Positions 1,712-47,409 of a stretch of 64,000 nt of DNA are shown piece by piece. The number at the start of each line of letters is the position of its first letter. The stretch's first letter is position 1. Position numbers and translations under genes: made by a program. A model generated the notes under the pieces. That model saw nothing but the letters and a program-made list of their open reading frames with translations. It ran no database searches and was not told the DNA's origin. The stretch lies in the NCBI GenBank assembly GCA_020891255.1, contig BQFW01000011.1:372001-436000 (forward strand), given 5' to 3'. Source of the stretch: Entomortierella parvispora E1425 (lineage: Eukaryota; Fungi; Mortierellomycota).

Positions 1712-4700
1712 TTAACGGCGGCTGCGTTTGATCGCTCGAACAGTCCTGTCGCTGCTGTCCTGGTCGCCACTAATTGTCTGCCTCTTTCTTGCAGACCTGG
1801 ACGAAGCAAGCGGTATTAACTCTTGCTCCAAAGGCTGTCCTCTTTTTGACCTCCTCCGATCCAACACCTTACTGGTAGTATCGTTCTTCTTCACCATGAT
1901 TGTCTGATCCTGGTTTATATACTGCTGAGTTGATTCTTGTCGCTTTCCAACTGTCTGCGCTTGACTCTTCGCCTGCCGACAAGGCTGCGTGGGGTCCTGT
2001 TTAGCTGGTTGACTCTGATCATAAGCCTTCCAATAGTCGCTAATACATTTCCGCTCAATAAAGTTCTCCTGAGGTTCCCAAGTTCTGTCTTTGGCCTTAT
2101 ACCCTTTCCAGTTGACGAGGTACTCCACCCCCTCCCCAGGTTCTTGCCTGTGATCGAGGATTTTCTCTACTTCATAAGTACTTGTTTCTTCAAAGTCGTC
2201 GAGCACAAGCTTTAACTGTGAAGGCGCGAATTTCCTGCCGAGCTCTTCACCTGTTCCGTCCTTTAATACGTAAGAACCGCCCACAGTCCGTCGTACAACA
2301 GTATACGGACCTTCATACCGAGGCGAAAGCTTGTCTCCTTGTATAGGGTCCAATGACATTACTTTTGCTCCGTCTGGAAACTCATTGTGCAGTATCGTCC
2401 GGTTAAAACGCTCAATCATTCGACGTTGAGTATCCTGCGCTTTTGTTTGGATTGCGGGGAAGACGACCTTCGTCATGTACTCCAATCGCTTCACAAGTTC
2501 CTCCTCTGATGACCATTTTTCTGTGGTTGTGGTGAATTTGCTGAGACCATTGAATCGGCGCCCAAAAAATAAAGAAAATGGTGATGAGTTGTGTAAAGCC
2601 ACAATTCTTGTGTTCATCGCCAATTGCGCCATTGGCACATGTAGTGCCCAATTGTCCTTCTGATCCTCGATCTCCTTGCGAATAATATTACATGCTGTCT
2701 TGACATGATTTTCTGCTACTCCGTTGCCTCTGGGATGATACGGGGTGACAAGTCGATGTTGAACATCAAACCTGGTGGTCAATTGCAGAAGGACGTTATT
2801 AGCAAATTCTTTTCCATTGTCCGATTGTAGAATGCGAGGAAAACCGATAAGAGTAAATATCTTGAACAAGACTCTGGCAACAGTGAGCGCGCTCTTGTCT
2901 GGGATCGCCTCTAGAAAAACGAATCTTGTACAGACATCCACTAAAACGAGTAGGAATCGATTTCCATTGCTTTGTACAGGGAACGGACCGGCCAAGTCCA
3001 CTGCCATATGTTCTCCTGGCAGCTGGGCGTGAATGGCAACCATAGGGTGGTATCCTTTCCTAGCGATGTTGACTTGCTGGCATTCTTGGCAGCGTTGAAC
3101 AAACTCCAAACAATCCTTGGCTAGCTTTGGCCAAGTCTTGCCCAACGAATGAATCTGCTTCACCATCGCATTTGTGCCAATATGGCCCATTGCATGTGCA
3201 TCGCTCACTATCTTATTGCGATTGGCCAACTTCACCGTCTCTTTAGGGGTGTCTTTGTCCTGAATTAAGTGAATGTAACTGTAGATCTTTGCTGCGTTTC
3301 TTTCCCCAGTCCTGTTCAACCACAGCTCCTGAGGGAATTGTCGCGACAGCGCGTCTGGCAGCACGTTCAACACTCCAGGGCGATAAACGACCTTGAATGT
3401 ATAATCCAGAATGGTTTCCTGCCATGCCGTCAACATTGAGTTCATCTCCTTTTGCGTGTGCATAAAAGTCAAAGCACGATGGTCAGTAAAGAGCGTGAAA
3501 CAACGACCCCACAGGTAATAATGAAGCTTTTTTAACGCAAAGACAATGGCCAAAAGCTCACGCTGCGTGGCGGAATAATTCCTTTCACTTGGTTGCAATG
3601 AGCGTGCAACAAATGATACGTACCGAATATTCTTCGGTTCATCTTCTCCTCCTGGTAGCTGGTACAGTACTGCTCCAATGCCATAGTTCGATGCGTCCGT
3701 GGCCACATACTGTAAAATGGCTGACTGAAGTCTGGGAAATGTAAAATTGGCGCTTGCACCAATAAGTTTTTTAAAGTGTTGAAGCACTTCAACTGGAGTT
3801 TGTTCAGCGTGAACGTTCCTGGTTCATTTCTCAGTGCATCTAATGGTGCTGCTTGCCTGTCGTAGGTGCCTTCCATTCATCGATGTTCGCCAATTTGTTG
3901 GGGTCAACTCTCTTCCCATTGACGTCAATGATGAATCCCAATAAGGCCACCTGAGTGCTGTAAAACCTGCACTTGTCTCCGTTGATGATAAGATTCGCCT
4001 CTGTCAGTCTCTCGATGACAATCCTGACATGCTCAGCGTGCTCCGCCTTGTTCTTTGAAGCTATCAGGATATCATCAATGAAATTCCTAACGAATTTTAG
4101 ATCTCCAAGAATTCTACTCATTCCTCTTTGAAACAATGACGATAACGGTTTGAGTCCGAAAGGCGCCTTATTAAACATGTATTGAACTCCTCCATGCATG
4201 AATGCTGTCAAATTTCTGTCTGCTGCATGAATTGGTAGCCTGTGGTATGCTTGTCTGAGATCAATCGTCGTGAAAACTTCGTTGCCTCCCGCAAAGTTCA
4301 TAATATCTGATATCAGTGGGACAGGGAAATTGTCATCTGGTAAATAGGCGTTTAACGGCCTTGGATCCAAGCATACACGATACAGTGTTTTGTTCCCTTC
4401 CAAATCCTTTTTTGCTGCGAGCGTCAAAGTATTGTTGTATCTGTTTCCGGCTGGTGCTAACATGATCACATCGTCCTTTATCCATGCTTCCACTGTGTAA
4501 CAGGAATACGGTGACATCACGCGATGTGTACCTACAAAAGCTAGAAACTTGCAATATAATAAAACTCACTTCTTGTCTCCACTCCACCCTCGATACTCCT
4601 ATTGCACACTGCTGCATCCAGAATTGGAACCTGCGACGCTGCAAATACTCGTGGTCTTCTATACAGTTCTACTCCTTCTGGTACTGCTAAAAATACCTTC

Positions 4701-7280: not shown

Positions 7281-7293
7281 TCGATAAAAAAAA
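7281..7293 (-). promoter_or_regulatory. E1 primer-binding position: T8-ATCGA (non-tRNA)
   Basis: Directly abuts the 5' LTR; no TGG start; complements LTR TCGAT plus a poly(A) tail. Confidence 0.7.
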
Positions 7294-7465
7294 TGGGATA
7301 TTTTGGGCTCTCACTTACAATATGACTATCGAGACAAGAAGGAGGATCTTTATGTTCTGCCCTCGCACTCCTTTGATAAGGGAGTGCGAGGGTGGCTTGC
7401 TACTAAACTAGGTTACTAAAATAAACATCCCTATTAATACACTTCAAGGCCCACGATATGCCACA
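7294..7465 (-). repeat. Family A 5' LTR (172 bp)
   Basis: Direct repeat of 1304-1483. Confidence 0.95.
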
Positions 7466-7470
7466 AGGGG

Positions 7471-7608
7471 GTCCCCGTCAACGTGAGTAAGTATGGGTAC
7501 GAGTAATGACGAGACGGAAGAAGAGATCTGATTTAATGAGAGAGCGCTGGAGGCGCTGATATATCTTCGTCAACTGAAAATTAAGGGTCAGAGGCCTGAT
7601 CCGGCACA
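7471..7608 (-). repeat. Family B 3' LTR, major part (remainder at 1289-1303)
   Basis: Reconstructed LTR matches 13241-13313; ends CCGGCACA next to a PPT-like tract. Confidence 0.85.
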
Positions 7609-7888
7609 GAAGCCCCCGGCGAGTTTTTAGGTCCAGGGAGGTGCTCGACAGAGGATGAACGTTGAGGAAAAGGAAGTAAAAACCTCAGATTTTGAGAAAG
7701 AAGTAAACTCAAAAGAATTAATTTGGTTGTGCGAGGAGAAAAAGAAGAAAACCTCAGAAGAGAAAATGAAGAGGGCAAAATAATAAACCTCAGTTGAAGT
7801 TGTGCGAATGGAAAGGGTGAGGAAAACGTTCAAACGACCAGGGTCGTAAGCGTGCAAAAACCTCGGAGCGGGATTCTTCGAACAGGAG

Positions 7889-13228: not shown

Positions 13229-13240
13229 CGTCAAAAAAAG
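13229..13240 (-). promoter_or_regulatory. E2 primer-binding position: C-T7-GACG (non-tRNA)
   Basis: Abuts the 5' LTR; complements LTR CGTC plus a poly(A) tail. Confidence 0.7.
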
Positions 13241-13313: not shown

Positions 13314-13432
13314 TGCAATAGGAGTACTGGGGACAGAGTGGAGACAAGAAGTGATGTTTATTTGAGTGCTAGATACTAACTTATATAGGCGAGGACCGCG
13401 TGATGTCACCGTATTAATGTCATACTGTTACA
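13314..13432 (-). repeat. Family C 3' LTR (119 bp)
   Basis: TG...CA ends; about four differences from 37533-37650. Confidence 0.9.
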
Positions 13433-14514
13433 CCTTCCCCTTTTAAAAAATGAGTCCGCGTCTTTGTTTAAAAGCTTGGACCATGTCAGCACAATTGTCT
13501 AAGTTGCTTAGTGGGACCCATTCGTCGGCCTCTCTGCCGTAGCCTTTCCATGAAACCAAGAACTGATGTTGCCTGCGGAATCGACGGTAATTCAAAATTT
13601 CCTCGACTTCGTACTCCTCTTCGCCGTTGATTATGGTCGGGTCCGGTGGTGCTACTGTTCGAGGCCCGAGAGATTCTGGGGACGACCGATAAGGTCGGAA
13701 CGTGTCCACATTGTGATATTCTCGTGGGGTCTTACTTACAAACAATAACCGTCAATAGAAGTCAACGAGAACAAGAGAGGGTTTTATTAAAGACAGGCAC
13801 CAGCAGGTCTTTTATAGTCCGGCGGGTGCCAGTCACGGAAGACTCTTAAACATCGGAGAAGTAAAAAAAGGACTGCGACTCAGGACTGGCGTCCTGAACC
13901 CCATACCTAGTGCTAAACATCACAGACTCCCCCTCCAGAACTGAACTAGGGAAGTGTTCGTAATGTGTGGCTAGAAGCGGTAGCTAACCGTTCTGAGTAG
14001 CCATGATTAAAGGAAAAAAAACCGTTAGGACGGGCAAAATAAGCCTTTAGTCAATAAGCGAGGGATTGAAACCTCATTGTGAACTAAGCAGATTGTACAA
14101 GTCTGTCTTTGTCACTTGAGAAGTAAACCGTGAAGATCGGGAAAGCTTCTACTCTCAGGCAAAAAATAAAACCTGTGCGAGACAGTGCGTCTGCAGATTG
14201 CAACTGTCTATTACTTAGACTGGCTTGTGCCATGTCATTAGTCAGGGGTGATCTGACTTGTCAAGATGGAAAACGCAAAGCGGACAAAACCATTGACAAT
14301 GTAGTTGCATGAGGAGAGGAATGACAAAAGCAAAAAGCTTGTTTGTCTCACTCACGCACGGGTCAAGGAGTTAGAGCATGCGCGCCCACTCCCCCCGCAA
14401 AAAAAAAAAAATGAAAAAATTTTCTAAGCCACCGCCCATTAGGATGGCCCATCATCTAATTCATTCAACTCAATTCAGCTCCCCATTCCTTTTCACTTTT
14501 CTCCCAGAGGACGA

Positions 14515-17500
14515 CTACAGCTTCGCTCTTTTGTTTCGCTCTGACCTTCGGACAGACTGGACATTGTCAACAGTAAAAGAGACCTTCTTAAGCGCCTTAT
14601 TCGGGACTTTTCGTTGTCTCGTCTCCGTCGCCTGTAGAGCGTGCAGTCTTTTCAACTCTTCCTTCTTGGCCTTCTCCAACTTGCGTTGATGCTTGGCGAC
14701 CACTCGCGGATTCTTTTCATTCATGCGTTTCCAGTATTGGTGGACCATCTGGTCTGAGTCAAACCTCTCGTAGGGGATGTAGGAGTCTTCACTATCCTTG
14801 TATCCCTTCCAGTGGACCTTGTAGAGTATTCTGCCGTCTTCAAAAGTATGGCCTTTGATTGATTCTACTTCATAGCTCTCTTCGGAGGGCTTTTCTAGGT
14901 CCTGGGTTACTACGTTGAGCTGCTCAGGTGCATAATGACGAGGAAGAATCTCACCAATTGCGTTTTGTAATTCATAGGCTCCGAAAGCTGTCCTTCTTGT
15001 TACTTTAAAAGGGCCGTCCTTTTTAGGGGTAAGAGCACCTTCGGCAACAGGATCTTCAGCCATGACGAATGCACCAGGTTGTATTTCGCGAATGGTGTGA
15101 GATTTGTTGAACTTATCGATCATTTTCCTTTGGTTACTGGAGCTAAGCTCTGATAACGCAGGAAATACCAGGTGAGTCAAGTATAATAATCTTTTCTCTA
15201 ATTCTTCATCATTTAGAAGACGACTCTCGGCCGCTGTGAAGTTTGATATCCCAGGAAATGCTCGACCATAAAATAGTGAGAATGGTGTTGAATTGTGAAG
15301 TGACACAATTTTGCTGTTCATCTGAAGCTGAACCATGGGTAAGTGCACATCCCAATCAGTAGGGTTTGCTTCAATGTTTTTTCGCAAGATGTCCTTCATT
15401 GACTTGATATGTCTTTCCGCCACTCCGTTACCTCGAGGGTGGTATGGCGTTGAGACTCGGTGGTCAATCTGTAGAGTTTCTGTCAGATTGGTAATAATTT
15501 TGTTGACAAACTCTAGACCATTGTCGCTTTGGATAATCTTTGGAAATCCAATGTCGCAAAATAGACGAAAGAGACGCTTACTAACTGAAGCAGCATCTTT
15601 TGTTTTCAATTCAAATAGGAAAACAAATCTAGTGCAGACATCGACAACTAGGAGGGCATATTCATTGCCGTCTTTACTTGGTGGAAATTGAGCCAAGTCA
15701 ATAGCCAGATGTTCACCAGGGAGTTCTGCGTGAATGGCTTTTAAAGGGTGGTATCCCTTTCTAGCAATGTTGTACCGCTGACATGATGAACATGATTTAA
15801 CCCAGAGGACACAGTCTTCTTTCAATTTGGGCCACGTCATATTGTCTAGCTGGATCATGTTGACCATTGCTGTCGCACCTAGATGACCAAAGGAGTGAGT
15901 CCTGTTCAAGATCTCTCTTCTTTTGGACTTCTCAGGTACTTGTCTATTATCAGGTTCAGGAATTTGATGCATGAAAGGTTTATCAGACAATTGAACGCCT
16001 TCTGCTAGTTTAAGACCTTCTGGACTCATCCGCAGGGCAAAATCTACAGAGTCGATAGTCTCTGCATCTGGAGCTGCCATTGCTGCATTGAATCTCTTAC
16101 GAGCCTTAATCTCTGACATCTTGCTTTCCTCCCATAGATCATCAGGAAATGCTCTGGACAATGCATCTGGAATAACATTCAGGATCCCAGGACGATGGAT
16201 GATCTTAAAGTCATAGTTGAAGATCGTCTCTTTCCAGTCTGCCATGATGTTGTTCAGATTCTCTTGATCCATCAGGAAGGTCAATGGCTTATGGTCAGTG
16301 AACAGAGTGAAGCGTCTTCCCCACAGGTAATAGTGGAACTTCTTAAGTGTAAAGATAATTGCCAACAATTCTTTCTTGTATGCAGGGTATCGCTTCTCAT
16401 GATCACGCAGTGCCCGAGCCATAAACGAGATGTAATTAATCTTGCTGTCATCTTTTTCTCCCAATGGTAGTTGATACAACATTCCTGCAATACCACGATT
16501 GGACGCATCGGTTGCAACGTACATCGGAAGTTCCCAAATGACATGGCAAAGGATTGGTGCTTGAGGAATCAATTTCTTAATTCCTTCAAAGCTTCGCATT
16601 TGGAGACTATCCAAAACGAATGGTCCCTTTACGTTTCTCAGGGCATCTAAAGGACTGGCTATGTCACCAAACAGAGGAATATATTCTCTGAAATGGTTGA
16701 ACATTCCCATGTATCTTTGTACCATCTGACCGCTGGTAGGTGGAGCCCATGACTTGATGTTGGCAATCTTTTCAGGATTAATTCTTCTCCCGTACTTGTC
16801 AACAACAAATCCCAACAGTACAATCTGTGTGCACAGGAAGCGACTCTTCTCTCGATTGATAATGAGTTTTGCTTTTGTTAACCTGTCTATTACAATTTTG
16901 ACATGTTGTAGGTGCTCTTCCTTGGTGTGAGAAAAGATAACTATGTCATCTACATAGATGCAGACAAACGAAAGGTCTCCCAGGAGGTAAGTCATTCCTC
17001 TCTGAAAAATACTTGTCATTGGCTTTAAACCAAAAGGAGCTCTCGCAAACATATATTGCCTCCCCTTGTAGGTGAATGCCGTCAGGGGTTGACTCTCTTT
17101 TGATAGTGGCAACCGATTGTAAGCTTGAGCAAGATCGAGCGTGGAGTAATAACTGTGACCAGCTGTCTTTTTCAGGATGTCGGCGATCTCAGGTAGCTGA
17201 AATGTATCCGATAACAATAACTGCTTGTTTAACAACCTAGGATCTAAACAGACTCTATATTTTAATATCTTGCCTTCTAGGTCTCTTCTGGCTGATAAGG
17301 TCAGCGAGTTATTGTGTGGATTGCCTTTCGGCGCAGGCACAATCACCCCACTATCCCACCATTTTACGATTTGTTGAGCTACTTCAGCATCTGCTGTCTG
17401 CGCATGGAATTGTCTTGTCTTGACAAAGACTGTGCAGTTAGGAGGTACTTTGAGTTCAACTCTCATAATCTCCAAGGTACAGTGGCTCTTGGGATCAATC

Positions 17501-19686
17501 GCGGTGTTGAGGTCCAGTAGATTCTGAATCTCTTTCTCAAAAAGGGCTTTGTCTCTGATAAATTCAGCAGTTTTTTCTTCTTCAGGCTTTTCGTCAGGAA
17601 TGATCGGCGGCTTGTCTTCATCATGAATCCAGATGTCAGGTAGAGGAGATGGTTTGGGCATTCGGACACCTCCGATGTAATACCCAAAGCGATGGAATAG
17701 GTCTGCTCCGACATAAAAGTCATAGTAAGGTATGTTCATAACACCCACTTGACAAGAGACCGAACGTCCATTGCAGGCAAGATCTAACTTATCACATGTA
17801 AGTAGGTTCTCTGCCTTAGCTCCTGCTTCTCCCAGCTCAACTGGATCTGGTAGCTTTGCCACTCGAATTCCCAGCTCTTTAGCAATCGCTGAATCAATGA
17901 ACGAATCCGTCGATCCAGTGTCTAGAACTGCTGTAAGTGATTTACCATTGGCAATTAATTCTACCGCAAAACGGTTGTCACCCTCTTGCGCACCTCTGAA
18001 AGCACAAAGCTTCTTCGTTGGTGGTGTTGGGTCAAACTCATTAAAGTACTTTGAAAATTCAGCAATTTTATTAATACTAACAGTTCCAATTTCTTCTGCT
18101 AGATTGGCATCCAGACTCGAACTGCGGATCATATCGATTTCTCTAGTGATGGCAGCTAGTCTCTTAGGATTCAATGGAACCAATGGAATTGGGCTACTCT
18201 TTTTCATGGCTGCGACCGCGCGGATAGGACCTTGCTCAGGCCTTGCTTTCTTGAAGGACGGTCGCAACTCAGGGTGCACAAAGTAGCACTTGGAGTGATG
18301 ATGCTTCTTGGAGTTGCATCTCTCACTGGTACATGGCTGCTTCTCCTTCTCGCTACGAGGGTGCTTGCCAGTGCTTGCTTGCGGAATCTGCGCCTTCTTC
18401 CCAATGGTGGTAGAGGAGGAAGCACTCTTTCCTGCAAGTGACTTGAATCTTGACTTGAACCACTTGGCCCAATCAGTCTTGCGACCAGGAAGTGCAGTAT
18501 TGTCGGCTCGGAGGCACTCGAGGAACTTCAATACGTTCGGGACATCAGGCAGATTTGGGTAAGTCTTTGTAACTGCTTTCTGGCCCTCATCCGGCAAACC
18601 CGCATAAAGTGACTGAATGACCAACTTCTCATGCACAGTATCCGTTAGGCCAGACGCTTCTAACAGAAGATCAACCTTGTACGCATAGAGGTGGATATCA
18701 GCAAATGATGCTGAATCCAAAGAGAAAAGCTTGTTCATCGCCTCAGCTTGCAAGAGCTCGACTCGAAATAACTCCTGGATGCACTTCTCAACTGGAATCC
18801 AAGTGTTGATGGAGCTGTAATCGTAGCACGGAGGAGACTCTGTCTCAATCACATTGTCCATCTGGGTGGCTAGGTCCTTGCCCATTTGCTTGAGCATGTC
18901 GTCTAGCAACTTTACTTCGATACCAGCCTTGCGGAACGCCTTCATCATGTACTGACTCGCCATGATGTCAAACAGACTGCCCAGCTGGATCTTGTAGAAC
19001 TCGGAGAACTCACGCATAAACTTGTTGATTGCACGAACGATTTCCATGGCGTCAGTGCTGGCTTGGAAGTTCAGCTTCAGTTCCGGCTCATCGTCGAAGT
19101 TTATCGGGATCACTCTGGAGAAGTCGATCTTCTCACTGTCCTTAAATACAGGAACGGCCTTTTCTTTCAAGCGCCTGATGTCAATATGATACAGGTTGGA
19201 GTTGTTGAAGGGAATGGCGTAGGCACCGGTGGTTTCGACTGATGGAGTCGTAGTGGTTGGTGTAGGTGTAGACATGGGCGTCTCGCTTCGACCTCTCCAA
19301 CTCATGTCCACTGGCTCTCGAGGACAAAACTCCTTCCAGTGATGGTATGCCAGGTCCATGTCTCGGGTCACCGTTTTAATCTTGCTGAATGTGGCATCGA
19401 TCTGAGCGCTGTGGTTGCTGAGGATCTTGTCTCTTTCCTCAGGGCCCATGTTCGCATCCTGGTCGAGCTCTTTGGTCGCCTTTCGAAGGGCGTCCTTTTG
19501 CTGCACGAACTTCAGCAGTAATTCGGTCCGCTCAATTGTGACTTTGTCCAGTTCTTTCTTCATCACATCAGCCATAGAAATAGCTTCTGTCGGAATAGGA
19601 ACGGCGTCGTCATACTCTTGCATTGGGACATCTTCGGACAGAGGCGCTGGAGGGCGCTCTGGACTTGCATCGACCTCGGCACTCAT
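14515..19686 (-). CDS. E3 Gag-Pol polyprotein, 1723 aa
   Basis: Zn knuckle CTSERCNSKKHHHSKC; protease VLDTGS; RT RVCLDPR and YVDD; RNase H ATDASN; integrase IIQSDNG; chromodomain YEVESIKGH...WKGY. Confidence 0.97.
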   Translation of the reverse strand: MSAEVDASPERPPAPLSEDVPMQEYDDAVPIPTEAISMADVMKKELDKVTIERTELLLKFVQQKDALRKATKELDQDANMGPEERDKILSNHSAQIDATFSKIKTVTRDMDLAYHHWKEFCPREPVDMSWRGRSETPMSTPTPTTTTPSVETTGAYAIPFNNSNLYHIDIRRLKEKAVPVFKDSEKIDFSRVIPINFDDEPELKLNFQASTDAMEIVRAINKFMREFSEFYKIQLGSLFDIMASQYMMKAFRKAGIEVKLLDDMLKQMGKDLATQMDNVIETESPPCYDYSSINTWIPVEKCIQELFRVELLQAEAMNKLFSLDSASFADIHLYAYKVDLLLEASGLTDTVHEKLVIQSLYAGLPDEGQKAVTKTYPNLPDVPNVLKFLECLRADNTALPGRKTDWAKWFKSRFKSLAGKSASSSTTIGKKAQIPQASTGKHPRSEKEKQPCTSERCNSKKHHHSKCYFVHPELRPSFKKARPEQGPIRAVAAMKKSSPIPLVPLNPKRLAAITREIDMIRSSSLDANLAEEIGTVSINKIAEFSKYFNEFDPTPPTKKLCAFRGAQEGDNRFAVELIANGKSLTAVLDTGSTDSFIDSAIAKELGIRVAKLPDPVELGEAGAKAENLLTCDKLDLACNGRSVSCQVGVMNIPYYDFYVGADLFHRFGYYIGGVRMPKPSPLPDIWIHDEDKPPIIPDEKPEEEKTAEFIRDKALFEKEIQNLLDLNTAIDPKSHCTLEIMRVELKVPPNCTVFVKTRQFHAQTADAEVAQQIVKWWDSGVIVPAPKGNPHNNSLTLSARRDLEGKILKYRVCLDPRLLNKQLLLSDTFQLPEIADILKKTAGHSYYSTLDLAQAYNRLPLSKESQPLTAFTYKGRQYMFARAPFGLKPMTSIFQRGMTYLLGDLSFVCIYVDDIVIFSHTKEEHLQHVKIVIDRLTKAKLIINREKSRFLCTQIVLLGFVVDKYGRRINPEKIANIKSWAPPTSGQMVQRYMGMFNHFREYIPLFGDIASPLDALRNVKGPFVLDSLQMRSFEGIKKLIPQAPILCHVIWELPMYVATDASNRGIAGMLYQLPLGEKDDSKINYISFMARALRDHEKRYPAYKKELLAIIFTLKKFHYYLWGRRFTLFTDHKPLTFLMDQENLNNIMADWKETIFNYDFKIIHRPGILNVIPDALSRAFPDDLWEESKMSEIKARKRFNAAMAAPDAETIDSVDFALRMSPEGLKLAEGVQLSDKPFMHQIPEPDNRQVPEKSKRREILNRTHSFGHLGATAMVNMIQLDNMTWPKLKEDCVLWVKSCSSCQRYNIARKGYHPLKAIHAELPGEHLAIDLAQFPPSKDGNEYALLVVDVCTRFVFLFELKTKDAASVSKRLFRLFCDIGFPKIIQSDNGLEFVNKIITNLTETLQIDHRVSTPYHPRGNGVAERHIKSMKDILRKNIEANPTDWDVHLPMVQLQMNSKIVSLHNSTPFSLFYGRAFPGISNFTAAESRLLNDEELEKRLLYLTHLVFPALSELSSSNQRKMIDKFNKSHTIREIQPGAFVMAEDPVAEGALTPKKDGPFKVTRRTAFGAYELQNAIGEILPRHYAPEQLNVVTQDLEKPSEESYEVESIKGHTFEDGRILYKVHWKGYKDSEDSYIPYERFDSDQMVHQYWKRMNEKNPRVVAKHQRKLEKAKKEELKRLHALQATETRQRKVPNKALKKVSFTVDNVQSVRRSERNKRAKL

Positions 19687-20139
19687 AAGGTAACGCTATT
19701 GATGCGAATGAATACAAAAGAAGCGTTACGCTATGTCTCTTGAATACAGATAGTGAACGCTAACCAGTCAATCGAGTTGGTGGTTTAGACGTAAACAATA
19801 ATATTTTGTTTTGGGACTCAGCCAACAAAAACAAAATCAGTGATATGGACGACAACAGTTGCTGGACTCACTGCAGTGGATCAACCTCTGAACAATGGAT
19901 CTACAGTAACAATGTTGTTCGAACAATGTGTGGAGCACAAAGGAGTGATCAAAGAAAAGGGGCACAAAGGACAAGCCGTTGTGTTCTTTCCGATCAACCT
20001 GCACGGGTGGATACGACTGAGAGGAGATCCCAATTACTGTACACTACACAACAGAGAGGATGATCGATTCTCAAAGGATGGATGATCAACCGGACTGATA
20101 GATGTATAATGGTAATGGATGGATGCCCACTCTTAAGTA

Positions 20140-20151
20140 CGTTGAAAAAAA
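20140..20151 (-). promoter_or_regulatory. E3 primer-binding position: T7-CAACG (non-tRNA)
   Basis: Abuts the 5' LTR; complements LTR CGTTG plus a poly(A) tail. Confidence 0.7.
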
Positions 20152-21877
20152 TGTGATATTCTCGTGGGGTCTTACTTACAAACAATAACCGTCAATAGAA
20201 GTCAACGAGAACAAGAGAGGGTTTTATTAAAGACAGGCACCAGCAGGTCTTTTATAGTCCGGCGGGTGCCAGTCACGGAAGACTCTTAAACATCGGAGAA
20301 GTAAAAAAAGGACTGCGACTCAGGACTGGCGTCCTGAACCCCATACCTAGTGCTAAACATCACACACATGAAAGACGTCGTGGATCTTGTAAAAGGGAGG
20401 TAACTCAACGCGGAAGGTGACTGGCGAGTGTTGTTCCAACAGTGTGAATGGCCCAAGGTACTGTGGTCGCAGTTTGTCGGCTGGTCTAGTGCTATCGGCG
20501 GGAATCGTGATGTTGGTAGCTCTCAGCAAGACCTTATCACCGACTTTGCATTTATGGTCACGTCGTCGCTTATTCGCCTGCTCTTCCTGGTGATCCTGAG
20601 CGCGCTGTAGTGCATCTTGGGCAAGGATGAGCGTTGTCGCCTGCTCCGCGAGAAAACTGTCGACGGTGGGGACTGGGCTGCTCGGCACACTGAGAAGCGC
20701 TGTGGGGAGGCGGGGGTGTTGACCAGTGTTGAGGAAGAACGGAGAGTAGCCAGTGGAAGCGTTGACGGCGTTGTTGTAAGCAAACTCTAGCGAGGGAAGT
20801 AGCTGGTCCCAGTTCGACTGCCTGTTGTCAACGAAGGCCCGTAACATAGTCTTCAGCGTCTTGTTCATGACCTCTGTCTGTCCGTCTGTCTGTGGGTGGT
20901 AGGCTGTAGACAGAGCCAATTTCACATCCAGCAGCTTGTGCAACTCCTGCCAGAAGCGGCTGGTGAATCGTGTGTCGCGATCGGAGATGATGGATGTGGG
21001 GAGGCCATGCAATTTGAAGATATTGTCGAAGAACTGATGGGCAACATCGACGGCTGTGGCGGAGGTGGTGCTGGGGACAAAGTGTGCGAGCTTGGTGAGC
21101 TTGTCGACAAAGACCGTGATGGCGTTGAAGTTGCGGTCTGTGGTTGGAAGAGGGCGATGAAATCCATGGTGACGACGTCCCAGCGTTGAGAGGGGATGGG
21201 AAGAGGCTGCAGCAGTCCTGCGGGTCGCTCCTGAGATCCTTTGTTCCTCTGACACTTTTCGCAGGTGGCAACATAGAGTTGGGTGTCCTTAGCAATGTGA
21301 GGCCAATACACAAAGCGGCGCAGGTTGTCGTAAGTCTTCTGGAAGCCAAAGTGTCCAGCGGTGGTTGAGTCGTGAGCATCACGTAGGAGGGTGAGGCGGA
21401 TGGAAGAGTGCCGAGGGATGGCTAGAGTGGTGGTTCCTCGCCTAGTGTAGTAGAGGAGGTGGTTCTCAAACCGGTATCCATTGGCAACTTTTCCCTCCAG
21501 ACAGTCCTTGTAGATGGGTCCGAGGCGAGGATCGTTCTCGTAGTCCTGCACAAGCTGGTCGCGGACGTCGGAGGACAGCGACAGGCTGAGGTTGTGGAGC
21601 TCAACGGGGTCGGGGTCGCGGTAGTCCGGTCGGCGAGAGAGGGCGTCAGGGACGATATTCTCAACTCCTGGCTTGTACTTGAACTCCATGTCGTATTCTT
21701 GAAGCAACTCCATCCAGCGACCCTGTCGACGAGTGAGTTTGGGCTGGGAGGGGAAGTGCAATAGGAGTATCGAGGGTGGAGTGGAGACAAGAAGTGAGTT
21801 TTATTATATTGCAAGTTTCTAGCTTTTGTAGGTACACATCGCGTGATGTCACCGTATTCCTGTTACACCTTCCCCTT

Positions 21878-26700: not shown

Positions 26701-26712
26701 CCTTTGCTACCA
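26701..26712 (-). promoter_or_regulatory. PBS TGGTAGCAAAGG, probable initiator tRNA-Met
   Basis: Directly after the LTR CA; implies a primer ending GCUACCA, fitting the A1:U72 initiator signature; same 12-mer at 32514-32525 and 37521-37532. Confidence 0.8.
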
Positions 26713-26823
26713 TGCAATAGGAGTATCGAGGGTGGAGTGGAGACAAGAAGTGAGTTTTATTATATTGCAAGTTTCTAGCTTTTGTAGGTACACATCGCGT
26801 GATGTCACCGTATTCCTGTTACA

Positions 26824-31177: not shown

Positions 31178-31349
31178 TGGGATATTTTGGGCTCTCACTT
31201 ACAATATGACTATCGAGACAAGAAGGAGGATCTTTATGTTCTGCCCTCGCACTCCTTTGATAAGGGAGTGCGAGGGTGGCTTGCTACTAAACTAGGTTAC
31301 TAAAATAAACATCCCTATTAATACACTTCAAGGCCCACGATATGCCACA
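31178..31349 (-). mobile_element. Family A solo LTR inside family F pol
   Basis: TSD AGAAG at 31173-31177 and 31350-31354; matches 7294-7465. Confidence 0.95.
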
Positions 31350-32340: not shown

Positions 32341-32525
32341 GGTGTTGTTTGGGATTTCTTGTTCGTATGAGGAAGAGGAGGTAGGGCTCGGGGGTTCGGA
32401 TTCGTCTGATGAGTCGGGTGCCGAGGCGGGGTTACGGAACGAGCGGAATGCGTTGCCTTTTCTGGAGGCCAGGTTGGTACTAGGTTTTCAGGTGTGGGGT
32501 GGAACAGGGTTTGCCTTTGCTACCA

Positions 32526-32799: not shown

Positions 32800-33276
32800 A
32801 GAAGTCAGTTTAGATACCCTTAAAAGATTGCGTTAATATAATTTCGTGTTCAGAGCAGTAATTGCTCTGGGTCGCTTCCTTCCCTACTTTTTCGTTTGCC
32901 TTTGTTTGATCGTTACAGAACACATACACATCCCCCCCCCACTTCCTGCCCGATATCCCCTTTGCAGCAGCAGCAAGATCGACGCCTTAACTCCGATTGC
33001 TGAGACTATTAGTAGCTAGTCTAACCTCCTCCCCCCCCCCCTTTACCTTTGGATATCACAGACCCTGTTCTGCCGATCAAGCTTGCCTTCGTCCAAGTCT
33101 TGAGCTTCCACCCGACTGAGATCTTTATTGATACTTGGTTCACACAGTTTAGACAGTGAGATCCTGCAACGTCTATCCTCCCCCTCGCAAGCAATCCCCT
33201 TTCCCTTGATCACTTGTGACCAGCCCCTCTCTCCTTGAGCTACGACCGATCCCCAACCCGTTGTAGCAACACCACA
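32800..33276. mobile_element. Family E repeat, second copy; first 32 bp missing
   Basis: Near-identical to 281-756; followed by CCGT and E6 gag sequence. Confidence 0.85.
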
Positions 33277-33493
33277 CCGTGCGCGCCAGAACGACGAACG
33301 ACGGCGCAATGAACACTCGGAGCGTAGCTCACACAGCTCAGACGATCGACAAGACCGTTCCCACCGCGGATCAAGCCGCTTCGGGCCATATCAAGCTGAC
33401 AATCGCCAGCGCAGAGACAACAGGGATAGCCACAACTCTCGTGAGCGCAATTACAGTAAGGACCCTCTTCATATACTACGCTCTCGTAAAAAT

Positions 33494-36400
33494 GTGTGGC
33501 AAACATACCACGATCTTGATATCAACTTCAACGCACTCACTCTTGCGTCCTACTCCTCTCAGACTAGAGACATGTCGCCAGTGTCAGATAAAGAATTCAT
33601 AGAGTCTGTTCACTCCACAGATTCAGTCCTGGCACATGCGGGGAGGGAAAGTAGAATGTCACAAGACATACCACAGGAATATATGATAATAAACGATGAG
33701 CAATCACACATGTTTGAAACACTTATATACAATGAAATGGGTGACCAGAACGACAATGACAAGAGACTTGTAGTACCGATCTACTTCGAAGGCCTTCAAT
33801 TTGAAGCCCTAATTGATTCTGGAGCCACGAAGTCATTCATAGACAAGTCATTAGTAGAAGCTCTGAAAATTGAGGTCAGCAAAGCACGGGGAAACATCTT
33901 CCTCGGGCACAAGAAAATGCATGTAGCAAGAACAGGAGTAACAGAACATATAGAAGTAGAATGCAATGAACATTCGCTTCTCGCCTCATTTGAACTGTTT
34001 GACCTACAATACCCATTTGTCATTGGCATGGACCTGTTTAACAAACTAGGGTTCTCAATCGGAGGCATTGCAGACGGACGAGCAAACGCACAGACTCTGC
34101 CAACGCCAACACCAGATGAAAAAGCCATCCGTGTTACCATTGGAAACACCAATCGAAGAACTTACTGACAAGTTCAAGAAACTCAAAGCACAATTCATGA
34201 GTGAAATCCAAGACTCGATAAAGGACAACGCACAGATACCGCTAGACAGCTACTGCACTCTACCAGAGATGCACGTGTTCTTGGATGTTCCTGAGGGCAC
34301 GACTATTTATCGCAGACCAAGGACGTTTGCTGAACAGCAACAGCATATTTTCGACGAACAAGTTGACAAATGGCTTAAAGATGGAGTTATCACACTTGCT
34401 CCGGCCAACAATCGGCACAATAACACGCTAACTCTCGCGGCCAAGAAAGATCTCCTCGGCAATAAAACGAAATGGCGGGTTTGCCTAGACCCACGTCCTC
34501 TGAACAAATTATTAAAGGATGACAACCATCCAGTACCATTAATATCGGACATCTTACAACAGATAGGTGGCCACATGATTTATACAACGCTCGATTTGAC
34601 ACAAGCATATCACCGGTTACCTATCGAAGCAGGACATCAACCACTCACTGCATTCATGCACCGAGGAACTCAATATATGTTCCGACGAGCTCCATTCGGA
34701 CTTAAGCCACTGTCAAGCATATTCCAACGTGGAATGACACGCATCTTGGGGGACTTGCCCTTTGTCCTGGTGTTCATTGACGACATCGTTATTTTCTCCA
34801 AGACCAAGGAAGAGCATGCAGCGCACGTCAAGTGTGTAATCGAACGCCTAACAGAAGCAAAGCTTATTATCAACCCAGAAAAATCACACTTCTTCTCAAC
34901 ACAGATTGTACTCCTCGGCTTTGTTATCGACTTGGCTGGAAAACGGGTAGATCCTACCAAGCTAGCCAATATCGACCAGTGGGTTCCACCAACCACAGGC
35001 ACTCAAATTCAGTCCTACATGGGCACATTCAATTTCTTCCCAGAATTCATCCCGCTGTTCAGTACATTGGCAGCGCCACTGGATAAGCTGAGGCATGAAA
35101 CAAAAGCGTTCAAACTCAATGCAGACGAACTCGATGCTTTCAATACATTCAAGCAATTGCTAAGCCATGCACCAATCTTGCACTTCGCTGACTTCGGTCT
35201 GTCGTTCTATGTCGCCACTGACGCATCCAACGTAGGCATTGCATCGGTCCTTTACCAGAAAGTCAGGAATGAATCCAAGAAAAAATGGGAGAACAGATAC
35301 ATATCCTTCATGGCACGCTCTCTACAAGACAGAGAACGACGGTATTCAGCCACACAAAAAGAATTGCTAGGAATCGTGTTTGCACTCACGAAATTCCACT
35401 ACTACCTCTGGGGAAGACACTTTACACTGTATACAGATCACCGAGCACTTACGTTCATTCACTCGCAGAAAGAGTTAAACTCCATGCTCACTGGCTGGCA
35501 TGAAACAATCCTGAGTTATGACTTTACGGTCGAATACCGACCTGGAGTGATGAATGTGTTGCCAGATCACTTGTCTAGACTGTTCCCAGCCTCCATCCAG
35601 ACTCGCTACGACTCCAACCATGGGCACATAGTCAACGCTTACATGCACATCATGCAAAACAAAGACACAATGTTAGAAGTCGTTCATGGCAAAAAGAAGC
35701 AGGACGATATATTGAACAAAACCCACGCCCTCGGCCACCTTGGAGCGAATGCAATGGTCCGGTCTATACATGCGGAACAATACACATGGCCCCATCTCAC
35801 AGACGACTGCTTGAATTGGGTTAAGAAATGCTCGGAATGTCAGAAGTACAATATTAGTATCAAAGGCTATCATCCATTAAAAGCTATCCACGCAAACCTG
35901 CCAGGAGATCATATGGCTATGGATTTAGCGGGACCGTTCAAACTCTCAAAGAAAGGCAATGAAATCCTTCTTATCGTAGTCGACGTATGCACACGCTTCG
36001 TCTTCTTAAGAGCGCTCCCTGATAAACAAGCAAACACTGTCGCTAAAGCCCTGTTTGATATATTTTGTACCGTTGGCTTTCCTCGCGTTTTACAATCCGA
36101 TAACGGCAGGGAATTTGTGAACCAAGTCATGCTTGCAATGACCTCTGAATTTAACGTTGACCACCGGCTACTTACGCCGTATCACCCTCGAGGAAACGGC
36201 GTTGCCGAACGACATGTCAAAGTCGCAGTCGACATCCTCAAGAAAGAACATCATCAGAAACAAGATACTTGGGACCTTCATGTACCCATGGCACAGCTTG
36301 CAATGAATACAAGAATCGTTGCTCTCCATAATTCATCACCGTTCTCTCTCTTCTTCGCTCGCAAGGCCAATGGCTTCCGAAATTACTCCAAATCTACCAA

Positions 36401-36968
36401 GAACGTCATGACCCACAAGCAGCTCTGTGATCGTCTCGCATACATGACTGAAATTGTCTTTCCAGCGATTGACAAGAAATCAGAAGAGACTCAAAAGAAA
36501 ATGATCGCCCGATTCAATGCCACAGTTCTGCATAATGAATTCCCTGATGGCGCAAAAGTCATGACACTTGATCCCATCCGCGGTAATAAACTTACGCCAC
36601 GGTATGAAGGCCCGTACACAGTAGTGCGCCGCACGACCGGTGGATCTTATGAGCTCAGAGATGGTACAGGCGAGTCGCTCAGTCGCAACTATGCCCCATC
36701 CCAGCTCAAACTCGTACTCGAGGATTTAAATACGCTGCCCATATTCGAGATCGAGTACATTCTCGACCACCGTCCTCATCCTTCTCGAAAGGGGGAGTGG
36801 GAATACAAAGCAAAATGGGCTGGCTACTCCAAAGATGACTACAGTTGGGAACCCGAAGAAAACGTTATTGAAAAACAATGTATCAGAGAATACTGGCAAC
36901 TTCTCAAAGAAAATAAGCGACCACAGGATCAAAGATCGAAGAGATACCAAACGAGAATGAGGAACTAA
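33494..36968 (+). pseudogene. E6 pol, one frameshift near 34122
   Basis: ORFs 33494-34168 and 34068-36968; closely resembles E1 pol. Confidence 0.92.
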
Positions 36969-37149
36969 AACGCTACTACGCAAAGAAGACCTAACAGGCA
37001 AAGAGGTTTTTTACCACATGGTTTTCCTCAAAGACAAGAGGTTTTTCACTTTTCCTCAACCATAACATTTTCATAGAGGTTTTATTTTTTACCCTCTCAC
37101 TGACCAGTAGTGTCAACCCGCGCTTCGCTCTCCATGGGAGGGGAAGTTC

Positions 37150-37325
37150 TGTCGCATAATTTGGTGGCGCAGCGGCAAATGATGCTGCTGGCAGCAAGGC
37201 ACAGTCACGGAGGCAACGGTCAGGATAATATCCTGACCGGTTCAATAAAACAGAGATCCCTCTCTTATTCTCACTGACTCCGTGTGCCATATACTTTTCA
37301 CTATTATTCGTAGTCTGCGACTACA
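37150..37325 (+). repeat. Family G 3' LTR (right end inferred)
   Basis: Follows the PPT; TGT...ACA ends; AATAAA at 37244. An alternative end at 37289 is possible. Confidence 0.65.
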
Positions 37326-37650
37326 AATAGCTTTACTGGCTGAAAAGAGGTTGGTATCCGGGGTGGTGGTCGCAGGAGGGTTGTTTGGGACAGTCATTGA
37401 AAGGCCGTGGAAAAGGTCGGTGAGGTTGTCGATGGAATCGAGGGTGTTGTTGGAGTCAGGGTGGCAAGGTTCAAGGGTCAGGGTCAGGGGTCAGGGGTCA
37501 GAGGTCGGGGGATCGAGGTTCCTTTGCTACCATGCAATAGGAGTACTGGGAACAGAGTGGAGACAAGAAGTGATGTTTTTTGAGTGCTAGATACTAACTT
37601 ATATATGCGAGGACCGCGTGATGTCACCGTATTAATGTCATACTGCTACA
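37326..37650 (-). mobile_element. Family C 5' remnant: LTR 37533-37650, PBS 37521-37532, leader and gag start
   Basis: LTR matches 13314-13432; leader resembles the E5 leader. Confidence 0.85.
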
Positions 37651-37851
37651 CGAACAGACTCAAAAGTGGATGGCAGCAGGTACAGGTTTGAGTCTGTTCA
37701 CGATTGACTCAACACAAAGGCGGATTTTTTTGGAGGGTTTTATTGAGAACAGGCACCAGCACATTTTTATATCACTGCAGGCGTCTGACACAGGAGACTC
37801 TTATTGTCGGAAAGGGTCATCGAATTCCTGTATGATACTGTATATATCGCA
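37651..37851 (-). mobile_element. Family-D-related LTR remnant
   Basis: Aligns by eye with LTR D (GAGGGTTTTATT..ACAGGCACCAGCA..GACTCTTA..TCGGA); right end uncertain. Confidence 0.6.
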
Positions 37852-45717: not shown

Positions 45718-46491
45718 AGGGTAGACACATTTGTGTGAAGACCCCCCGTGTGAAGGACCTTCATTTGTGTGTAGTCAAAATAAAAAAATGGCTAAGCCAC
45801 TTCATTTGTGTGAAGAGATCCTTGTTGCCCCTGCGCCGAAAAACAAGTTCAAATATATCTCCCATGGAACAACAGGCCACAACAACGATCCTTAGCGGCA
45901 TTTTCCTTACTTTCCTCAATGCTGTGAGGTCTATCGAGAATATTATGGACGAGCGTATTGAAGAAAAGATGGAGAAGACGATCGACAAGCGCGTTGAAGA
46001 AAAACTGGCGATCCTGTTGAAGAAAGAGGTATATCCGTACGTCCTCATTGAAGCATCCGGTCGCGCCTACTACGAAGCGGGCGCGACGCACTCGTTATCC
46101 CTTCGGATTTTCATTGCATCCAGTCGCTATTAGTGGTTCACTCCCTTCTTGCCAAGGATGCAAAAAGAGAATTGACCGCGGAGGACAGCGGATAGTGTGG
46201 AAGACAATGGACAATGAGACAATGAAGTTCACCACAACATACCATTTCCACCCAGACGATGATTGTCTTAAGAGGAGCCTCGACAGGTCTCCCAAGGACT
46301 TGGATGCGGCTAGAGTGGTGCTGGGCGACGCGATCGACAAGGAGGAATAGGAGAGACGCGACGCGATTTTTTTTTTTTTTTTTTTTTTGCAGAACTTCAC
46401 ACAAATAGAGTGGCTTAGCCATTTTTTTATTTTGACTTCACACAAATGAAGGTCCTTCACACGGGGGGTCTTCACACAAATCTGTTCACTC
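45718..46491. mobile_element. Non-autonomous TIR DNA transposon, Kolobok-like (774 bp)
   Basis: TTAA at 45714-45717 and 46492-46495; ~98-bp TIRs, each with three ATTTGTGTG(A/T)AG motifs; purine-purine termini. Confidence 0.8.
45864..46350 (+). pseudogene. Cargo ORF of the TIR element: coiled coil plus PARP-type zinc-finger-like motif, frameshifted
   Basis: MEQQATT...KKEVYPYVL, then SCQGCKKRIDRGGQRI...YHFHPDDDCL in the next frame. Confidence 0.5.
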
Positions 46492-47243: not shown

Positions 47244-47409
47244 CCTTTATTACACGGTGACGAGCCGTGGCATTTGTTGCGCGGGGATCCGGGGTCTTTT
47301 GTTCGTCTGGACCACGCGGCTTTTCTCAGGTTGTAGATAGTTTGGTCTAGCACTTCACTTCTTTGGCTCGACATAGCAAATAAAATGTTGCAAAAAAAAA
47401 AAAAAAAAA
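47244..47409 (+). mobile_element. Short poly(A)-tailed retro-insertion (LINE/SINE 3' end)
   Basis: AATAAA at 47379; A18 at 47392-47409; 15-bp TSD CGTGTGTAGTACCCT at 47229-47243 and 47410-47424. Confidence 0.85.

Follow-up and report, generated by a model that had tools for sequence, protein, structure and literature searches.

Chromoviruses of Entomortierella parvispora with a primer-binding site complementary to their own predicted polyadenylated 3′ end

Introduction

Minus-strand DNA synthesis in long terminal repeat (LTR) retrotransposons is accepted to be primed in one of three ways, namely by the 3′ end of a transfer RNA (tRNA), by a tRNA fragment, or by the 5′ self-primer of Tf1. The present work concerns E3, a retrotransposon of the fungus Entomortierella parvispora, and its relatives, in which the 5′ LTR is followed by a run of thymines and a short family-specific anchor. 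E3 lies in a stretch of 64,000 nucleotides (hereafter the window; positions 372001-436000 of its contig in the 38.9-Mb genome assembly), the first 38 kb of which consist of nested Ty3/gypsy chromoviruses, one inserted into another. A sequence-only reading of the window had proposed that these elements are primed by their own poly(A) tail, and the proposal was followed up in the same genome and among relatives, taken as homologues from public assemblies and from a metagenome scan.

The element E3

E3, on the minus strand, is a Ty3/gypsy chromovirus by its LTRs, target-site duplication, polypurine tract, and domain order. The 5′ LTR (20152-20364, minus), 213 nucleotides (nt) in length and running TG...CA, is 100% identical to the 3′ LTR (13712-13924, minus), which ends in CACA and passes into the target-site duplication with no thymines in between. 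The 5-bp duplication, ATGTG, is found at 13707-13711 and 20365-20369, and the polypurine tract GGAGGGGGAG (13927-13936, minus) is situated 2 nt upstream from the 3′ LTR. Its single open reading frame (ORF) of 1723 amino acids (14515-19686, minus) was assigned by Pfam the domain order gag, protease, reverse transcriptase (RT), RNase H, and integrase, with a chromodomain at the C-terminus. All coordinates originally reported were confirmed, apart from a slight adjustment of the LTR limits.

A T-run and anchor matched to the LTR

When the E. parvispora genome was searched at the protein level and the hits were compared by blastn with the families of the window, the E3-like RT classes resolved into five families, namely E3, A, B, F4, and G5. 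They share a common design after the 5′ LTR, consisting of a spacer of 0-2 nt, a run of six to eight thymines (T6-8), and an anchor of 4-9 bases that is the exact reverse complement of a motif in the element's own LTR whose next base is A.

The E3 site (20140-20151, minus) is composed of T7 (20145-20151), which abuts the terminal CA of the LTR, and CAACG (20140-20144). Its counterpart in the 3′ LTR is a predicted polyadenylation signal and cleavage site (13762-13788, minus), marking the putative border between the terminal repeat (R) and U5 regions and reading AATAAA (13783-13788), 15 nt, CGTTG (13763-13767), and A (13762), with a TATAAAAG box (13806-13817) preceding by some 55 nt the A that follows the motif (the anchor-A). 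Beyond the anchor, the E3 leader (20126-20139, minus) presents a 5-nt loop, TACTT, and then AAGAG-TGGG, which is complementary to R and forms a second helix upon duplex folding; AAGAG (20130-20134) pairs in register with CTCTT (13773-13777) beyond the loop. T7-CAACG is identical in five genomic copies and in relatives at 71-86% RT identity, which retain CGTTG followed by A and in which the paired part of the leader is conserved while the loop varies.

Families A and B follow the same design with anchors of their own. Family A carries T8-ATCGA (7281-7293, minus; T7 or T8 in other copies), and its 5′ LTR holds CATAAA, 16 nt, TCGAT, and A (7327-7354, minus; also 1337-1364 and 31211-31238), with TCGAT and the following A at 7327-7332. 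Family B carries a spacer C, T7, and GACG (13229-13240, minus; an uninterrupted copy is found in L045), and its 3′ LTR holds ATTAAA, 20 nt, CGTC, and A (7507-7537, minus), with CGTC and A at 7507-7511. These correspondences, including the in-register CTCTT of E3, had been claimed from the window alone and were confirmed in full.

F4, the most abundant family, is represented in the window by a copy (33277-37300, plus) that is cut off at its 5′ end and whose 3′ LTR (37150-37300, plus) bears AATAAA at 37244-37249 and CACTG with its A at 37272-37277; full copies (L050, L029) display T7-CAGTG against the CACTG and A of the LTR. G5, with four dispersed copies, pairs T7-AATTG with CAATT and A. A T8 in L049 was considered as the G5 site and rejected, as it is not at the LTR border and the true G5 junction lies further upstream.

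Spread of the design and covariation of site and LTR

The same design was found in 23 independent lineages, down to 34% RT identity and including contigs from soil and marine metagenomes. Their T-runs comprise T6 in three lineages, T7 in 14, and T8 in six, and the spacer between the terminal CA and the T-run is absent or consists of C, G, TA, or TC. The LTR anchors of the other lineages include CCTTG, TCGTT, CCTT, GCTTG, TCGCT, TCATC, CGCTC, CACAG, AACCG, AATCC, CAAAG, TCACTT, TCAAACT, and TAGTTG, each matched by the element's own site; in L100, for instance, T7-CTTTGA faces TCAAAG and A. An element of Absidia glauca (Mucorales), with 496-nt LTRs that are 99.6% identical and a target-site duplication of CATGA, carries T6-ATGAT against ATCAT and A, 16 nt after AATAAA, so that the design is present in two fungal subphyla. 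In this element (L071, from LT553855), the anchor ATGATG after T6 (positions 3995-4006 of L071) contains the start codon of the polyprotein ORF, and the primer site and translation initiation overlap.

Two further loci were rejected as cases: L083, which sits in a simple repeat or too near the RT domain, and L152, which has a hairpin 9 nt from the T-run. No LTR pair was found within 4 kb in L070 (Rhizopus), nor a 5′ LTR in L067.

Covariation between site and LTR was a check that the sequence-only reading had called for, and the outcome was favourable. Among 11 families found without the match as a criterion, the anchor matched a 5-mer followed by A in its own LTR in nine, as opposed to 1 of 110 comparisons across families, and a 4-mer in all 11; in an 18-family set, the corresponding 5-mer and A figures were 16/18 for own LTRs and 7/306 across families. 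The match of E3, A, and B to their own LTRs is thus far beyond chance. In the metagenome scan (80 loci, CA(C)T6-10 sites), 13 of 49 were matched in the sense orientation as against 0 of 20 in antisense. Watson-Crick pairing is preserved at anchor positions 1-4 in 23/23 lineages with three or four pair types at each, at position 5 in 20/23, and at position 6 in 7/23.

The perfect duplex formed with the LTR and tail would span 11-16 bp, beyond which the leader and the rest of R form a second, imperfect helix. The mean energy of the own duplex is -22.1 kcal/mol versus -12.0 kcal/mol across families, and that of the second helix alone is -10.4 versus -6.0 kcal/mol, with none of 20000 permutations reaching the observed mean.

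The base following the anchor is A in every family, at an A frequency of 0.27 in these LTR tails, and an A in this place is typical of canonical cleavage sites. AATAAA or ATTAAA stands 14-27 nt upstream of the anchor-A in 14 of the 23 lineages, and most lineages devoid of a canonical hexamer carry CATAAA, AATATA, or AATACA at that place. The matched LTR position has the look of a site at which RNA is cleaved and polyadenylated.

When RT sequences were placed on a tree with its root at D8, a tRNA-primed family of the same window, every element with the T-run design fell into one nested clade with D8 outside. A subclade of 17 tips, all bearing the design, has a support of 0.92, and the deepest T-run branch is formed by L107 and L108. 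Inside the clade, no junction was identifiable in L089, L096, and L104.

The T-run lies outside the LTR

Polymorphism within families F4, A, and B was judged from match lengths. For F4, 15 copies match the LTR end, the T-run, and the leader, and in another 15-16 copies of the LTR the match stops immediately ahead of the T-run; for E3, five copies of the T-run junction stand beside seven LTR copies that end before it. Likewise, in A, B, L056/L057, L069, and L071, the 3′ LTR ends at CA and passes into flanking sequence. In every family, the T-run abuts the LTR end, apart from a spacer of 0-2 nt, and the LTR continues with bases other than A after the anchor-A. No A-run with the right anchor was found inside E3.

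Two consequences follow. Since minus-strand DNA starts beside the 3′ end of its primer and the T-run is external to the LTR, the last six to eight bases of the primer must be A's; and since the LTR continues with non-A bases after the anchor-A and E3 contains no suitable A-run, only an untemplated tail can supply them.

The D8 elements of the window serve as a control. Their conventional primer-binding site, TGGTAGCAAAGG (26701-26712, minus; also 32514-32525 and 37521-37532), is complementary to the 3′ end and CCA of a tRNA-Met(CAT) gene with at least five copies in the genome, and the same TGGTAGCAAAGG is carried by two other RT classes of the genome, at 28% and 34% RT identity (L075, L076). 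D8 uses a normal 12-nt tRNA-iMet site, whereas no TGG... tRNA site was found after the 5′ LTR in E3, A, B, F4, or G5, all of which start with T6-8. The original contention that tRNA priming does not fit these elements is therefore upheld, their sites starting with T6-8 and not with TGG while neighbouring D8 has a tRNA-iMet site. The D8 LTRs are very short (111 nt), with several solo or nested copies (21757-21867, 26713-26823, 4495-4607, 13314-13424, and 37533-37651), and one copy is reversed inside element A.

A proposed mechanism of tail priming and its rivals

The T-run can pair only with A's, the LTR holds no such A-run after the anchor, the adjoining bases follow the LTR of each family, and the position they match resembles a cleavage site; taken together, these facts lead us to infer that each element is primed by the polyadenylated 3′ end of its own RNA. 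In E3, A, B, F4, and G5, members of one chromovirus clade, the tRNA site would have been replaced by a site complementary to that end, and reverse transcription would be primed by the tail, a reading to which a probability of roughly 0.6 is given. Covariation, an A after the anchor, a hexamer in most families, and a T-run that is outside the LTR and finds no templated partner, being the sequence-level predictions of the poly(A)-tail model that were tested, were all borne out.

In the proposed scheme, transcripts would end at the anchor-A and then receive a poly(A) tail, whereupon the 3′ end (R plus tail) would anneal to a leader, either its own or that of an RNA packaged with it, with the anchor and the second helix setting the register. 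Only the six to eight A's paired with the T-run would be left of the tail after trimming, a step modelled on Tf1, in which RNase H cleaves where an RNA duplex of 11 bp ends. RT would extend the 3′ hydroxyl of the tail through U5 and R and then transfer to a 3′ R, and plus-strand synthesis would copy the retained primer, such that each cycle would write the site anew from the poly(A) junction. Rewriting of this kind is proposed as the reason that the anchor match is constant and that the 11-16 bp are perfect throughout, the distal helix being kept in part. Trimming of the tail, transfer of the strand, and renewal of the site by way of the retained primer are all presumed steps. Tail priming, if correct, would circularise the genome, confine copying to RNAs that are complete and polyadenylated, and renew the primer site in each cycle; it predicts a poly(A) site at the anchor and cDNA joined to R-A6-8.

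A wider version of this proposal, to which we accord somewhat better than even odds, holds that an old monophyletic chromovirus clade, present in Mortierellomycotina, Mucorales, and environmental relatives and perhaps embracing Skipper and Tcn1, gave up tRNA priming and starts reverse transcription from its own trimmed poly(A) tail on an oligo(U)-anchor site.

Several points weigh against tail priming. The poly(A) sites and the primer itself are predictions from the DNA sequence. A normal poly(A) tail far exceeds 6-8 A's in length, and the model has to assume that it is trimmed. Twelve of the 23 lineages came from a scan that required the match, which leaves the first 11 as the only unbiased test. 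No A-rich hexamer was found within 10-30 nt of the anchor in G5, L069, L097, and L106, and copy L055 has a C within its run (TTTTCTT). Finally, a simple poly(A) stretch was judged unlikely as the primer of the Dictyostelium element Skipper by Spaller et al. 2016 (PMC5006619).

The rival that survives best, albeit an unlikely one in our estimation, accepts that R-poly(A) pairs with the leader and assigns the pairing to circularisation, dimerisation, packaging, or regulation of the RNA, with priming left to an oligo(A)-ended host RNA, to a protein, or to de novo initiation. To our knowledge, no separate primer ends in A6-8 beside a family-specific anchor, which counts against it, as does the T-run being exactly where the 3′ end of a primer is required, abutting and outside the LTR, with no other candidate site (TGG...) after the LTR, unlike in D8. 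In its favour, priming by R-poly(A) is read from sequence, the U-rich hairpins of the 3′ untranslated regions (UTRs) described below suggest structural roles for the tail as well, and the second helix resembles long-range 5′-3′ interactions such as the bipartite site of Ty3 (PMC5371799).

Slightly less probable again is that the element's own 3′ end primes with a non-canonical tail, be it a short oligo(A) of the TRAMP type, a partly deadenylated decay intermediate, or a tail at a cleavage site not set by AATAAA. T6-8 would indeed fit short oligo(A) tails better than full-length ones, and four lineages are without a nearby hexamer; against this stand the canonical hexamer at canonical spacing in 14 of the 23 lineages and the A after the anchor, as at canonical cleavage sites.

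Very improbable is Tf1-like priming from the 5′ end, in which the 5′ R folds onto the leader and is cleaved by RNase H behind the anchor-A, with the T-run serving as a spacer that is copied and later trimmed by integrase: the complementarity of the own LTR to the leader recalls Tf1/sushi and what is predicted for the Tcn1 clade (PMC6317226), and a perfect duplex of 11-16 bp resembles the 11 bp of Tf1, yet only one T could pair with templated sequence, the cDNA would lack the complement of R and hence could not transfer to the RNA 3′ end, and the T's would need to be removed from every LTR end in spite of the conservation of T6-8 in 23 lineages. The earlier exclusion of Tf1-type 5′ priming thus stands, the complement being the 3′ end of R and the T's having no templated partner. 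Such a fold-back of the 5′ copy of R would moreover leave the T's unpaired and place them inside the LTR. A primer role for the leader itself was rejected on logical grounds.

Known systems and published T-rich sites

The closest known mode is that of Tf1/sushi elements, exemplified by Tf1 of S. pombe. As in the present families, a chromovirus uses its own transcript in place of a tRNA, a short perfect RNA:RNA duplex abuts U5 (11 bp in Tf1, 11-16 bp here), and an RNase H cut at the end of the duplex would suffice. The difference is that Tf1 uses the first 11 templated bases of the RNA 5′ end, whereas the partner here would be the 3′ end of R with 6-8 untemplated A's, so that initiation would join the two genome ends.

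In the target-primed reverse transcription of long interspersed nuclear elements (LINEs), a T-rich DNA end primes on a poly(A) template. Initiation by pairing of poly(A) with oligo(T) is the common element, with the roles reversed: in the present families, an oligo(U) stretch in the same kind of RNA would be the template and the poly(A) 3′ end its primer.

Ty3 offers a precedent for the joining of genome ends, its 5′ and 3′ ends being bridged through tRNA-iMet (PMC5371799). An initiation complex reaching from the 5′ leader to the genomic RNA's 3′ end would be common to both; in Ty3, the tRNA is the bridge as well as the primer, while in the E3-like elements the 3′ end would pair directly and prime.

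T-rich sites have been described before in elements compared here by their published descriptions only. The chromovirus Skipper of Dictyostelium was reported by Spaller et al. 2016 (PMC5006619) to carry a polypyrimidine stretch in place of a primer-binding site, for which a novel form of self-priming was suspected and which was said not to be known in other organisms. The pyrimidine run replacing the TGG site recalls the present elements, and a C on the LTR side, as in Skipper, is seen in B, L055, L056, and L086, most lineages here being without it; unlike here, no complement was found in the Skipper LTRs (PMC5006619). Novikova et al. 2010 (PMC2864245) described SM-Tcn1 as having no primer-binding site and a conserved thymine-rich leader, with a mechanism that was called unclear, and self-priming was predicted for the Tcn1 clade by Neumann et al. 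2019 (PMC6317226). As in the E3-like families, their 5′ LTR is followed by thymine-rich sequence instead of a tRNA site, and no link to a poly(A) junction was reported. The tentative mention, in the sequence-only reading, of such sites in Skipper-like lineages thus proved sound, T-rich or polypyrimidine sites being in print (PMC5006619, PMC2864245).

In a literature search of incomplete coverage, in which the phrase "poly(A) tail" was not searchable as such, no paper was found that describes tail priming or connects T-rich sites with a poly(A) junction. The T-rich motif itself is only in part new; as far as was found, the novelty lies in its correspondence to the poly(A) junction and in the proposed mechanism. 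Were tail priming true, it would constitute a fourth priming mode, using the transcript's own poly(A) tail, and would account for the T-rich primer sites that have stood as "orphans" since 2010 and 2016. Such a mode would also tie reverse transcription to 3′-end formation as a built-in check of RNA completeness and provide a simple annotation rule for elements now reported without a primer-binding site.

Other features of the elements and the window

Small hairpins that follow the pattern RRGG-U3-7-(2-22 nt)-U3-7-CCYY are arrayed between the ORF end and the polypurine tract in the F4 3′ UTR (36969-37149, plus), in B (7561-7888, minus), and in L055, L056, L058, L062, L067, L068, and L080. Fifteen were counted in 4.7 kb of 3′ UTRs and none in 50 kb of coding sequence, with 0.01 expected after shuffling. 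Rfam searches of the E3 and F4 3′ regions returned nothing above noise. The hairpins resemble U-rich clamps of the ENE type, by which a poly(A) tail is held (cf. the Evade ENE, PMC12501189), and by this analogy they might protect or position the tail in tail-dependent elements.

In L063-L066 (G5), L055, L056, and L069, the primer site and the gag-pol ORF are separated by 2.8-3.7 kb holding antisense ORFs of 150-370 amino acids, and these elements may carry an extra antisense gene.

Copies of E3, A, B, F4, and D8 are packed in one cluster of 30-60 kb per contig (C1, C2, C5, C6, C8, C10, C11, C13, C14, and C15), of which the first 38 kb of the window is an example, while the G5 copies are dispersed instead; the arrangement suggests retrotransposon-built centromeres targeted via the chromodomain. 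A 477-nt repeat, 97.7% identical between its copies at 281-756 and 32800-33276 (plus), recurs in several other clusters; it has no TG start and no LTR-like end, and replaces the 5′ part of the F4 copy in the window. Outside the retrotransposon nest, 91-nt inverted repeats of 95.6% identity (45725-45815 and 46395-46485), adjoined by runs of T22 and T18 (46367-46388 and 47392-47409), may mark another mobile element.

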